A stretch of DNA of 55,275 nt from Dimorphilus gyrociliatus (taxonomy: Eukaryota > Animalia > Annelida). Every line of letters begins with the position of its first letter. Position 1 is the first letter of the stretch. The notes beneath the pieces are model-generated. The model was not told the DNA's origin, did no database searches, and saw nothing but the letters and a program-made list of their open reading frames with translations. Location of the stretch: positions 35,771 to 91,045 of the forward strand of contig CAJFCJ010000120.1 of assembly GCA_904063045.1 (NCBI GenBank), read 5' to 3'. Position numbers and translations under genes: made by a program. Of this stretch, positions 7,700 to 12,471 are shown piece by piece.

Positions 7700-8100
7700 A
7701 TTCAATGGCAACCTAACAGTATCAAAAGCAACTATACAGAAAGCTCTGAAAGAAATGGCAGGGAAATTAAAAAAAAATCCCTCAACATTACCCCTCTAAA
7801 GAAGAAAAATAGACCACATTGAGTAGAAATGTGTAGAGGCGGGTTTGAAAATAGAATTGACTTGGACAACATAATAATCTCTTATGAATGTAGATTCAGC
7901 TTGGATGGGCTGGACAAATTTCAAGCCTGGCAGTTCAACCCAGAAAGAGAAAATTTAAGAACTAAGCATTCAATGGGTTGTGGAGGAGTCATGATCTGGT
8001 CATGTATCGGGTCAGATGGCTTCTTGCATAATTCCAGGATCAAAAAGAGTGTACAAAGAAATGGTAATTGGCTCTTTTGAACAAGGCCTTATGGAAAATT
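7700..8100 (+). mobile_element. Tc1/mariner transposase remnant (first catalytic segment)
   Basis: NIIISYECRFSLDGLDKFQAW...KHSMGCGGVMIWSCIGSDG resembles Tc1 VIFSDE.+F.LDG.DG...W...GGG.VMVWGCF. Confidence 0.65.
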
Positions 8101-8433
8101 GGCTTGACTTTTCCAAAAAACTTTTATACTAAATTACACACACTCACCAAAATATGCAAATAATTTTTAACTAGGAGAGGTAGAAAGTATCTGAAAATTA
8201 CTCATAAAACTTGGCAAAACTTCCTACATTAAAGTCAATTTTTTTAAAAAATGCCATTGTTTACCCATCAAACTAGATCATACAAAAAAGTCTGTGGTAC
8301 AAAACATTTCCTTTAACATTATATATATATGATATACATAAAGTATTTTGCAATTAATGCTAATTATATTGACAAATTGGTGTGTACATGTTTACATTAA
8401 TTATCTAGTCATTAGCAATGAAAGCCATTTATA

Positions 8434-8563
8434 GGGGTCGGGTGTGAACGTACCTGGGTGCGAACGTACCCGGGTGCGAACGTACCCTGGGCGGGTGCGA
8501 ACGTACCTGGGTACGTTCGCACCCTATTTTTATATTTATTTTATTTTTGAATTTTTGAATAAA
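8434..8563 (+). repeat. Left TIR of the MULE, with tandem 15-bp units
   Basis: Four gggtg(c/t)gaacgtacc units, one inverted unit and an AT-rich tail; the reverse complement is at 11013-11142. Confidence 0.95.
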
Positions 8564-9029
8564 CATGTACATTGACACCCTTTTTTCCTTCTGTTCCTTC
8601 ATTATATATTTGTTAATATATTGATTTGATAGAATGCAGATATTAAATAGAATACATATCCCATCAATATTAAATTACTACTTTAAAAGAAAATGTTGTT
8701 GAAAGTGAAATAGCAGCCATTTTAATAGTGATAGTTTTATTAAATAAACTTTCACTTGGAATATTTATCCTTGCAAAAGTAAAGCTATATTTACTGAATA
8801 AATTTGGACAAAGTTCTTCTTGGAAGCTTCAACAGAAGTGAGTATTTATATCTAATCATTGAGATTGTTGATTCATGATATTTTGATGTAATATACTATC
8901 TTCAATTGTGAAAAAGCTGAATATTTTTCATAAATAAAATTTCAGCCATTTTGAATATTTGGAAAGGAAATTTATTGATAACTGGAAATATTTTTAGATA
9001 ACCATCTACATTTGATTGAAGATTAAAAA

Positions 9030-10931
9030 ATGGCTTTCAAATGTCACAATTGTCATTCAACAATTTATGGAAGGCAAAAATATTTGAAATGCAGCCTTTG
9101 TAAGAATCTTATTCATAGGAAATGCACAGGTATGTAACTCTTTAATCAGCTTTCATGTAATTATATTTTTTAACATATTCTTATAGAAACACATAACATA
9201 CCAATTTGCAAACCTTGTAACAAAAGAAAATGTACTGTCATGCTCAAGAAGTTAACTAATCTGGAAATTCATCAATTCAAAGTAAATTCTGAAGAAAGCT
9301 TTATTGATGAAAGAAATAAGATTGCTGCAGTTGAGGAATCAATATTGGAGGATGAAAATCATGTTCTTTCAGAATGCCAATCAATGGACCTAGACTCTTT
9401 GGAGGAAGTTGAAGAGAATGCTGAAGAATATTGTGAATCATCCACAAAAAGTGATTTTGAGATTGTAAAAGGAGGAAGTAGAAAGGGACATGACATTTTA
9501 CTGAATGATGGATATTCTTTTGTTGTTAAACATAAAACACCATCAAGTACTATTTGGGTGTGCAGTGTGAGAAGTAAGAAGAAAAGATGTGTGGCCAGAA
9601 TAAGACAAAATGGAAATTTATTTCTCAAAGGCAATTTGGAACATAATCACAACAGAAAAAAGAATTTAGAAGTGGATATTAAAGTGAAAACAGATTTGAA
9701 AATTGTTTGCAGAAGTGATAATCAAACATCTGGAAGAAGCATTGCTGAAAAAGTTCTTCTATCCTATGAACCCAATGCAACTTGTCTTCCTGATATCAAC
9801 TATTTGAAGAGAATGGCAAACTCAAATAGACAAAAGTTTAGGCCAGTGGAACCTAAAGTGTACAACTTTAATTTAGATGAAACATTTTTGCCTGATGAAT
9901 TTTTGCAGAAAGATATTTGTGAAAATGGAGAAAGAATTTTAATCTTTGCAACAAACCATCAGCTGAATTTATTATCAAAATCCAACTGTTGGTACATTGA
10001 TGGTACTTTCAAGATTGTAAAAGAACCATTTTATCAACTTGTCACTATTCACTCATTTGTTAAGAAGAGTGGTGATATGAAGCAAGTTCCTCTTGTTTTT
10101 ATTTTTCTGACTTCAAAGCATACCAAAGCATACTTACAAGCATTTCAAGTAAATATTTCATATTATCTCTTCAAAAGTGATGATAAATAAAGTTGCTTTT
10201 TTGTAGCATATCAACAATCTTATCAATGATTTTCATCCAAAAAGAATTACAATGGATTTTGAAAAAGGACTATGGAAAGCATTATCAAAAGTATATCCCC
10301 TCACTGAATTTCAAGGTTGTGTATTTCATTTCACACAAGCAGTATACAGGAAAATACAAGTCAGTTACATTCAAATATATATAACATTATCTATTAAATA
10401 ACTTATATTATTGAATAGGCTCTTGGCTATGTAAAGAAATACAAAGAAAAAGGAAATGATTGGAAAGATTTCAGAAAATTGATGGCTCTGCCATTCTTGC
10501 CAGCACATATTATTCAACCAACATTTGACAGCATAAATGCAGAACTTTGTGAAAAAAATAGATTTTTGGACCTGCTGCAATACTTCCAAACAAACTGGAT
10601 CAAAAATAAATTATGGAAACCAAATAACTGGTCAGTTTTTGGTTTGTCTATTAGGACCAATAATGATTGTGAAGGATGGCATCAAAGAATGAATAGTAAG
10701 CTGCCTGCTAAAGGTTCTTTTTACATGCTGGTTGATGAGCTAAAAAAAGAGTCTGAGTTGATTGCAGTTTATGAGAAATTACTGTCAGAAAAAAGGATTT
10801 ACAAACATCAAAAGAAAAAGTATATTGACATCCAAAAGAAAATTTTTGATTTATGGGATGATTTCAAGTTGAACAAATTGACATCAATTGATCTATTAAT
10901 GCAGACATCCCATATCTACTCTCCAGCATAA
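9030..10931 (+). CDS. MULE transposase with an N-terminal PHD-like finger, FLYWCH domain and DDE core (575 aa, 4 exons)
   Basis: Exons 9030-9129, 9187-10148, 10207-10359 and 10419-10931 join in frame through GT-AG introns of 57, 58 and 59 bp. Motifs: C4HC3 (CHNC...CSLC...HRKC...CKPC), FLYWCH (GYSFVVK...IWVCSVR...CVAR...HNH), WYIDGTFK, MDFE, GCVFHFTQA, RTNNDCEGWH. Confidence 0.92.
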
Positions 10932-11012
10932 ATATCATTTGTCAAGCTTTATTGTTTTTTAGTATAATATTTAGTCTTTTAAATACATACTTTTAGATTT
11001 ATAGCTAAATCT

Positions 11013-11142
11013 TTTATTCAAAAATTCAAAAATAAAATAAATATAAAAATAGGGTGCGAACGTACCCAGGTACGTTCGCACCCGCCCAGGGTACGTTCGC
11101 ACCCGGGTACGTTCACACCCAGGTACGTTCGCACCCCAACTC
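11013..11142 (-). repeat. Right TIR of the MULE
   Basis: Reverse complement of 8434-8563, differing in the terminal few bases and at two C/T positions. Confidence 0.95.
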
Positions 11143-11225
11143 CCATTTATATATATATGCAAACTAAGAAAAAGCAGGCAGAGTATCCTGATAATACTTG
11201 CCTCATACCCTTTCTTTCTTAAATT

Positions 11226-12471
11226 ACGGTATTTTTCACAAAACTTTTCTCCTTCTTTCTAATTCTATTTCTTTCATTTGAAATTCAACTTTCTGGTAAG
11301 ATGATTTTTATCTATGTTTTTGGTGTTTTTATACAAGTTTTCTAACTATTCGTTCTTCATTTTTTTAAAGCTGCTGCTGCTGAACACTCAAAAACAGTTT
11401 GCGAACATCATACATTAAATATTCAATGTCCTATTGATGAGGAAATTTCAATACAAACCGCCATTTATGGCAGATTGAATGGAGATTTCAAGACCTGTCA
11501 CAAGAAATTTTTAACTAATTCTCCTTTTCGAAAACAGATATTAAATGGAATTTGTAAAGCAAAAAAATCTGAAAAGATAACTAAAGCGAATTGCAACAGT
11601 AAAAGATTTTGTTCAATTAAAGCTTCAAATCAAGTCTTTGGAGATCCCTGCTTTGGAATACATAAGTATTTATCAGTTAATTATGAATGCAAACAGACAG
11701 TGGTAGGCCTAAAAACAAAAATTGCTTGTGAACATAAAACACTTAATTTGGCTTGTTCAAATGGTCAATTTATTGAGATTATATCAGTTTTATATGGAAG
11801 ATATCAAGATGATCATCAAACATGTAAACATGGACTAAAGAAAAAACTTACTCATAATAATTGCAATTCAACACATTCCTACTTAAATGTAGGTCAATTA
11901 TGTAATAAAAAACAGAGGTGTAGTATAAAAGCAGAAAATTCTGTATTTGGTGATCCATGTATTGGAATATTTAGAAGCAAAATACATTTGTCATGAATTT
12001 GATCAAATAGAAACAACAACAGTAACAACTTCAACAACAACAATGGAGACAATTAATTATACAACACCTTCTCCAACTAGTTTTAATCATTGTAAGTGTA
12101 TTTTTTTCTATCTGAAACATAGTTTTTAACTTTTCTATTCTCTTTTTCAAGATAATATTCCAATAATTGTTTGTAAACATCAAATTGCTAGTTTAAAATG
12201 TTCAGCTAAGTCAATAATTCATATTGAGCATGTATTCTATGGAAATAGAGAAGATGATTGGATAAGTTGTACCAAGCAACACTTAAAGAGTATCTTATCA
12301 GCTAACAAGATAAGTCAATGTGAATCATTAAAGTCAACTGGAAAAGTATCTTTAATGTGCAACAAAAAACAGTTCTGCTCAGTGGAACCAAAACATTATT
12401 ATAGTTATCATTTCTGTTGCAATGACTTTAGTTTCTTTACTATTATCTATTCCTGTTTAAAGGTCAAATAG
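11226..12471 (+). pseudogene. Rhamnose-binding lectin-like gene with 3 SUEL (Gal_Lectin) domains and apparent lesions
   Basis: Signal-peptide exon 11226-11295 begins with ACG instead of ATG. Exon from 11371: VCEHHTLNIQC...AIYGR...CNSKRFCSIKASNQVFGDPCFGIHKYLSVNYEC. Domain 2 is frameshifted at GDPCIGI/YLEAKYIC (~11967). A Thr-rich linker and intron 12092-12150 precede domain 3 (VCKHQIASLKC...FYG...CNKKQFCSV...IIYSC), stop at 12469-12471. Confidence 0.8.

Follow-up and report, generated by a model that had tools for sequence, protein, structure and literature searches.

Phantom, a family of Mutator-like elements (MULEs) reportedly described by Marquez and Pritham in 2010, is among the described systems closest to the transposon treated here, a 2709-bp element at positions 8434-11142 (forward strand) of a 55,275-nucleotide stretch of the genome of the annelid Dimorphilus gyrociliatus (assembly GCA_904063045.1, contig CAJFCJ010000120.1, positions 35,771 to 91,045), which as a whole is called the window below. 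Phantom, listed as group 20, combines FLYWCH and MULE domains, occurs in animal hosts and has target-site duplications (TSDs) of 8-10 bp (PMC6446971). Among elements studied by experiment, the nearest is Muta1 of Aedes aegypti, a MULE of the FLYWCH-DDE type; the transposase of Muta1 binds the ends of the element and excises it via a hairpin on the flanking DNA, and the (C/D)xxH motif found 15-45 residues after the second catalytic Asp is a trait of MULEs (PMC5499845). Rehavkus, from arthropods and annelids, combines a PHD finger with a 9-bp TSD and long terminal inverted repeats (TIRs), and a minisatellite precedes its 3' TIR (PMC6446971, Table 1). Some MULE transposases are known to carry a PHD finger at their C-terminal end (PMC1702500), and MULEs have previously been reported in the D. 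gyrociliatus genome (PMC7854359).

The element in the window is very probably an autonomous cut-and-paste MULE of a recently multiplied family, encoding an intact four-exon transposase whose N-terminal finger comes from a PHD-FLYWCH-MULE clade. Its insertion duplicates 9 bp of the target, and most copies carry the gene intact. By the mechanism we propose, the FLYWCH domain would bind 16-nt subterminal repeats, and excision would proceed through a hairpin on the flanking DNA, by analogy with Muta1. The finger very probably descends from the Pygopus-type PHD of the wider clade.

The element and its four-exon transposase

The ends of the element are identical in the other full-length copies and are bordered by a 9-bp TSD, CCATTTATA, read in the sequence at 8425-8433 on the left and 11143-11151 on the right. 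MULEs are marked by a long TSD of 8-11 bp, typically 9, and by long TIRs, and the element has both, as a perfect 9-bp duplication and 124-nt arms. Inverted-repeat comparison places the left TIR at 8434-8563 (forward strand), composed of six imperfect terminal nucleotides and a 124-nt arm, and the right TIR at 11013-11142 (reverse strand). The arms proper (8440-8563 and 11013-11136) are 98% complementary, and the outermost six nucleotides of the two ends match at only three of six positions. Repeat analysis of the left TIR revealed 16-nt subterminal repeats with the unit GGGTGCGAACGTACCC at 8440-8524 (forward strand), four direct and then one inverted, and the same subrepeats recur in the right TIR at 11052-11136. 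The innermost pair forms a 14-bp hairpin (8493-8524), which was the only highlight of a sigma-70 promoter and terminator scan that is irrelevant to a eukaryote. We infer that these 16-nt repeats are the binding sites of the transposase. Copies that do not differ elsewhere have between one and at least five 21-nt subrepeats in the left TIR (8456-8511 in the window; loci L009-L018), which suggests slippage or repair errors in transposition.

The transposase gene lies on the forward strand. Coding exon 1 (9030-9129, 100 nt) encodes amino acids 1-33 and the first base of codon 34, including the finger ligands C5, C8, C21, C24, H29 and C32, and is conserved in a related subfamily (L029) and in a paralog (L043). 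Intron 1 (9130-9186, 57 nt, GT..AG, phase 1) is unalignable between subfamilies whose exons align. Exon 2 (9187-10148) supplies ligands C41 and C44 (through 9218), an acidic disordered linker, the FLYWCH domain (about 9477-9650, by Pfam and by a fold match to 2rpr) and D305 (9999-10001). Intron 2 (10149-10206, 58 nt, GT..AG) is followed by exon 3 (10207-10359), where Pfam and alignment locate D371 (10255-10257) and a CxxH motif, and intron 3 (10360-10418, 59 nt, GT..AG) by exon 4 (10419-10931), where translation and alignment locate E490 (10671-10673) and the stop codon. The four exons sum to 1728 nt, equal to 575 codons and a stop, and no piece contains an in-frame stop. Upstream, a putative intron of 108 nt (8838-8945, forward strand, GT..AG) may interrupt the 5' untranslated region, as read in the sequence; its donor and acceptor context and the flanking leader are kept in L029, which is 81% identical.

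Exons were searched separately, and the only joined protein used was a public gene model, CAD5126279.1 (P0001), which equals the window product over amino acids 1-519; residues 520-575 were taken from the translation of exon 4. Among 1.84 billion representative proteins, exon 2 had two 100%-identical matches, this model and CAD5126542.1 (P0002), both D. gyrociliatus gene models whose exon 1-2, 2-3 and 3-4 junctions are the same as those of the window. Both are host-transposon chimeras that leave exon 4 after residue 519 and read via the 3' TIR into host exons, and they therefore reflect the output of the annotation pipeline and are no proof of a transcript. The host part of P0002 resembles a large NACHT/LRR-type gene interrupted by a copy.

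Searched alone, exon 2 matches FLYWCH (PF04500) at 3.5e-7 and 30.7 bits, above the curated cut-off of 23.6, and exon 3 matches MULE at 4.2e-6; on P0001, MULE (PF10551) reaches 8.7e-12 and FLYWCH 4.1e-6. The catalytic residues D305, D371 and E490, contributed by exons 2, 3 and 4, occupy nearly invariant columns of the family alignment, and the CxxH motif (C392-x2-H395) lies 21 residues past D371. The original prediction, made from the letters of the window alone, had described an intact element with a FLYWCH and MULE architecture and a complete D-D-E core; the perfect TSD, the near-complementary TIR arms, the uninterrupted frame of 575 codons, the Pfam matches and the conserved triad bear this out.

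In an AlphaFold2 model of P0001 (833 residues, built on a 39-sequence alignment), the predicted local distance difference test (pLDDT) exceeds 90 for residues 121-500, is 85-94 for residues 1-40 and falls below 50 in the acidic linker, residues 64-120. PHD fingers bind two zinc ions in a cross-brace; for the finger of the model, strands are predicted at residues 18-20 and 27-29. The modelled core is closest to the IS256-family ISCth4 transposase (Foldseek 2.7e-5; Z 12.9 over 253 residues), with Hermes as the next match (Z 8.6), and residues 116-204 match the solved FLYWCH1 domain 2rpr (Z 7.8, 85 of 87 residues aligned). The protein is composed of a putative two-zinc finger (amino acids 1-47), a disordered acidic linker, FLYWCH and an IS256/Mutator-type DDE core.

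Origin and function of the N-terminal finger

The finger has the pattern C-x2-C-x12-C-x2-C-x4-H-x2-C-x8-C-x2-C, in which ligands 1-6 are canonically spaced; the loop between ligands 6 and 7 has 12 or more residues in the usual PHD consensus. It contains no Trp, having P39 two residues before the last Cys pair and L27 two residues before the His. The Pfam matches on exon 1, all below cut-off, were, from the best downward, C1_1 (1.4e-3), PHD_4 (3.7e-3), C1_2 and PHD (0.077).

The relatives of the protein are more informative. Of the proteins fetched, 23 from outside D. gyrociliatus, representing Branchiostoma, Mytilus, Patella, Pinctada, Mercenaria, Actinostola and environmental eukaryotes, carry an N-terminal C-x2-C-x12-C-x2-C-x4-H-x2-C-x21-25-C-x2-C, with x13 instead of x12 in the first loop of one (P0003). 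Nineteen have a Trp at the second position ahead of the His, and all 23 have a Trp, Phe or Tyr at the second position ahead of the last Cys pair. Several give full-length Pfam PHD matches just below threshold, and precomputed annotation with a newer Pfam, which includes PHD_Pygo (PF27108), lists PHD_Pygo, FLYWCH and MULE together in Patella and Mercenaria and PHD_Pygo with MULE in Tegillarca, Mytilus and Actinostola; the D. gyrociliatus proteins in the same annotation show FLYWCH and MULE only. Against solved structures, a profile of the family alignment matched the Pygopus PHD (8.6e-10), MLL1 PHD3 (2.9e-7) and also the KMT2C/D PHD. A hidden Markov model (HMM) built from the non-annelid fingers alone matches amino acids 3-33 of the window protein, ligand for ligand, at 27.8 bits, and a profile-profile comparison of the same partners with hhalign gives 84.7% probability. 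A language-model search with residues 1-60 placed PHD and PHD_Pygo clusters first (the three best, 0.87-0.88, rated by the tool as a lead only).

The full PHDs of the relatives, the match to the Pygopus profile and the 27.8-bit HMM score together indicate that the finger derives from a true PHD finger. Judged by these alignments, it is a shortened derivative of a Pygopus-type PHD that has kept all eight ligands and lost about 15 loop residues and both hallmark Trp. The seven D. gyrociliatus finger proteins, from at least three families with about 45% mutual identity, all have a ligand 6-7 loop of 5-9 residues and no Trp at either position, and since they share this derived state, the shortening is old within the lineage and the ligands have been kept since. 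Nor is the finger special to the window copy or its family, because a wide clade of animal MULEs carries the full form. The original prediction had called the finger PHD-like and had pointed to the missing Trp before the last Cys pair. The second observation is right, for P39 in the window and for all seven proteins; the first stands through the relatives, while the PHD model of Pfam on the amino acids of exon 1 stays below its cut-off.

In two paralog families, intron 1 (9130-9186 in the window; 1462-1510 in L043) follows ligand 6 at a distance of one codon, at the very place where the loop of the ancestral PHD has been cut down. Some relatives with a full PHD are called as single uninterrupted open reading frames (ORFs) on short environmental contigs, for example 649 amino acids on 2154 nt. 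Intron 1 may have arisen from part of the sequence that once encoded the loop, which would have shortened the latter.

As for function, PHD readers such as BPTF and ING2 have the Trp of their methyl-lysine cage two residues before the His. In the relatives this Trp aligns with a Trp of Pygopus; the window protein has L27 there, and the segment after ligand 6 is gone. With about 15 loop residues and both hallmark Trp lost, histone reading is unsupported, and so is the earlier proposal that the finger could read histone tails and bias targeting. What is left, a compact and presumably two-zinc module with a ligand spacing near that of C1 domains, most likely has a structural or protein-contact role and is not a methyl-lysine reader.

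A working chromatin reader that recognizes the histone H3 tail and biases the choice of integration site is unlikely, even if parts of the evidence would suit it. The finger is homologous to Pygopus/MLL-type PHD fingers, which bind H3 tails in solved complexes, and it has an aromatic residue, F3, two positions before the first Cys, as Pygopus has a Tyr, whose role there we only presume; the copies are strongly non-random in the assembly, all on small contigs. However, the pre-His Trp is replaced by L, K or S and the pre-last-Cys Trp is missing in seven of seven D. gyrociliatus finger proteins, whose ligand 6-7 loop has 5-9 residues as against 21-25 in the relatives, and the clustering on small contigs is equally well explained by local hopping, by selection in a compact genome or by islands common to all transposable elements (TEs; PMC7854359). 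A broader conjecture, which we regard as doubtful, is that the Pygopus/MLL-type PHD of the marine-animal MULE clade tethers the transposase to H3 tails and directs integration, and that tethering persists in the trimmed annelid version, with unmodified H3 or a partner protein as possible anchors. If true, H3 tethering would explain the presence of the family in particular genome compartments. MULEs insert preferentially near genes, and we know of no account of how the transposases of animal MULEs choose their targets.

Descent from a PHD can be set against a separate acquisition, in which the finger would be an unrelated C1/DC1-like or other treble-clef zinc module. The position of the finger (Met plus four residues) and the spacing of its ligands 1-6 are the same as in the PHD of the relatives, an R-Q motif is common to both, the HMM of the relatives' PHDs alone scores it at 27.8 bits, and in the feature-based Atlas comparison its top three clusters are all PHD or PHD_Pygo. 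It also lacks the N-terminal His that C1 domains need. These features make a separate origin quite improbable, even though C1_1 gives the best match, below cut-off, on exon 1 alone, the eight residues between ligands 6 and 7 resemble the seven of C1, and the structure neighbours in the Atlas include FYVE and C1-like proteins.

Three lines of evidence that do not depend on the gene models place exon 1 in the gene. The L029 subfamily, 81% identical in nucleotides, has kept the reading frame of exon 1, the eight ligands and, in the same phase, a GT..AG intron, and its introns can no longer be aligned with those of the window whereas its exons can. The ratio of nonsynonymous to synonymous substitution (dN/dS; Nei-Gojobori) between the window and L029 is 0.41 in the finger (46 codons), 0.78 in the linker, 0.14 in FLYWCH and 0.09 in the core, a small sample that nonetheless points to a constrained finger, if less tightly so than the core. 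A paralog family with 45% protein identity (P0157) has the same 100-nt phase-1 first exon (L043:1362-1461, with the intron at 1462-1510), ending one codon after ligand 6. By its conservation, exon 1 is real coding sequence of the transposase, as the original prediction had proposed in joining it to exon 2; it had also assigned most of a C4HC3 finger to exon 1, and six of the eight ligands lie there, with C41 and C44 in exon 2. It is very unlikely that the functional protein instead starts at Met52 (ATG at 9240), leaving the upstream ORF to chance or regulation, although a program-made ORF list begins the long ORF at 9240. Such a start would not account for a frame, eight ligands and a GT..AG intron kept in a subfamily whose introns are unalignable, for the same phase-1 exon in the 45%-identical family, for relatives of other phyla that begin with the same finger in one continuous protein, or for the joining of exon 1 to exon 2 in the public gene models.

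Copies, age and flanking DNA

A survey of the D. gyrociliatus assembly (G000; 77.9 Mb, 349 contigs) found at least 18 full-length copies with 98.9-100% identity on different contigs, together with internally deleted and older copies at 79-96%. Both flanks were read in 14 copies, that of the window and 13 others, and since these 13 end at the same bases with a perfect 9-bp duplication of their own, the boundaries of the element are not due to chance. An identical protein is encoded by 11 copies, including that of the window, and two more differ by one residue; the remaining copies have a stop or indels of one base, and some of these indels resemble assembly errors, in copies with many gaps and no mismatches. 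The mean pairwise difference is 2.1 substitutions over 2492 aligned internal columns, and eight copies show no difference at all over these columns, giving a star-like pattern. One copy (L001) is 100% identical to that of the window and is flanked by its own duplication, GCTATTAGA. In addition, a site on contig C74 (G000:C74:128332-128691) that is paralogous to both flanks, at 98-99% identity, lacks the element and carries CCATTTATA once (L032:1663-1671), so the insertion in the window is younger than this 1-2% divergence. The family appears to have multiplied very recently in D. gyrociliatus. The young insertion proposed earlier is confirmed by these numbers, and the comparison of copies across the genome, which had been named as a check on it, found them near-identical and not all highly diverged. 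We rejected the notion that the near-identical copies are assembly duplicates (haplotigs) and not transpositions, which the excess of the 77.9-Mb assembly over the published estimate of 73.8 Mb and the full identity of L001 might have favoured and which is next to impossible given that every copy examined, L001 with GCTATTAGA included, has distinct flanks and a different 9-bp duplication.

All scored copies of the family lie on small contigs (about 70-300 kb; C35-C259), four of them on C112, and none lies on the 33 largest contigs (C1-C33, 0.4-3.6 Mb each), which together make up, by a rough estimate, about 70% of the assembly. The clustering could stem from TE islands, from local hopping, from selection or from assembly. 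Many distinct families of the same FLYWCH-MULE clade, 40-97% identical to P0157, occur on many contigs of D. gyrociliatus, several with multiple near-identical copies each.

Downstream of the element, an ORF at 11475-11996 (forward strand) encodes two SUEL (galactose/rhamnose-binding) lectin domains (7.8e-27) and has paralogs with 81% identity on contigs C234 and C36. Because this ORF starts only about 330 bp from the element, the latter may lie within the 5' part of a host gene. The left flank (7834-8330) is repetitive, with dozens of matches across the genome at 75-85% identity, and, judged by eye, an ORF at 7829-8080 resembles what is left of a Tc1/mariner transposase, although Pfam finds nothing in it.

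Weight of the evidence and comparison with known systems

Several points count against the picture drawn here. On the window finger all zinc-finger models of Pfam stay below their cut-offs, the best being C1_1, and the homology signal spans ligands 1-6 only, the last CxxC aligning weakly. In fold searches with the 833-residue model, matches to the core and to FLYWCH took up the lists, and these searches say little on the fold of the finger. The dN/dS of the finger comes from only 46 codons, and splicing is predicted from gene models and conservation. Present-day activity is read from copy identity, by which the family is probably still active, and the binding of FLYWCH to the subterminal repeats is likewise an extrapolation.

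The fusion of PHD, FLYWCH and DDE, full in several phyla and shrunken here, is a candidate for a module of targeting or regulation that can be put to the test. Since 13 intact, near-identical copies are present in the 78-Mb genome of a culturable animal, D. gyrociliatus would lend itself well to assays of excision and targeting, and the family is possibly a tool for insertional mutagenesis in spiralians. The discovery itself is modest: MULEs were known in this genome, PHD fingers were known in other MULE-related elements, and the PHD-FLYWCH-MULE combination is already visible in database domain annotation. Our literature search found no description of an N-terminal Pygopus-type PHD in FLYWCH-MULEs.

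By its architecture, the element is a member of the MULE superfamily of the FLYWCH type, Phantom/Muta1-like. With Muta1 and Phantom it shares the N-terminal FLYWCH, a DDE core with CxxH, a TSD within 8-10 bp, long TIRs with internal short repeats, an animal host and an intron-containing gene; it differs in the extra PHD-derived finger, which does not appear in the descriptions consulted of Muta1 (504 aa) or Phantom. The Phantom architecture named in the original prediction therefore stands as a combination of FLYWCH and MULE, and the assignment to a clade, Phantom as against Rehavkus or another, goes by description only. Compared in the same way, by description, Rehavkus shares the 9-bp TSD, the long TIRs, one ORF, the PHD finger and a host range that includes annelids, but FLYWCH is not listed for it. 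The minisatellite that Rehavkus has before its 3' TIR is absent from the window element, in which Tandem Repeats Finder finds only the 16/21-nt TIR subrepeats and low-complexity A/T runs.

Among solved structures, ISCth4 (PDB 6xg8) and the hAT transposase Hermes are the best matches of the modelled core (Z 12.9 and 8.6), although they belong to a bacterial insertion sequence and a hAT element, have no FLYWCH or PHD and share only 8-13% sequence identity. The Pygopus PHD and MLL1 PHD3 (PDB 2xb1, 2vpe, 3lqh) are the best matches of the family's N-terminal profile and have the same C4HC3 ligand order; unlike them, the window finger lacks the cage-position Trp and the helical segment after ligand 6, and it forms part of a transposase and not of a chromatin cofactor. 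Full-length homologues are the PHD_Pygo-FLYWCH-MULE proteins of molluscs, amphioxus and cnidarians, for instance those of Patella caerulea (KAK6182207.1), Mercenaria (LOC123565429) and Branchiostoma (LOC118412295), with 30-41% identity, the same domain order and a finger at the very N-terminus. These relatives have a complete PHD, with Pfam matches to PHD or PHD_Pygo, a ligand 6-7 loop of 21-25 residues and mostly both Trp, some with Phe or Tyr in place of the Trp before the last Cys pair, whereas the annelid element has an eight-residue loop, no Trp and no Pfam finger match above cut-off.

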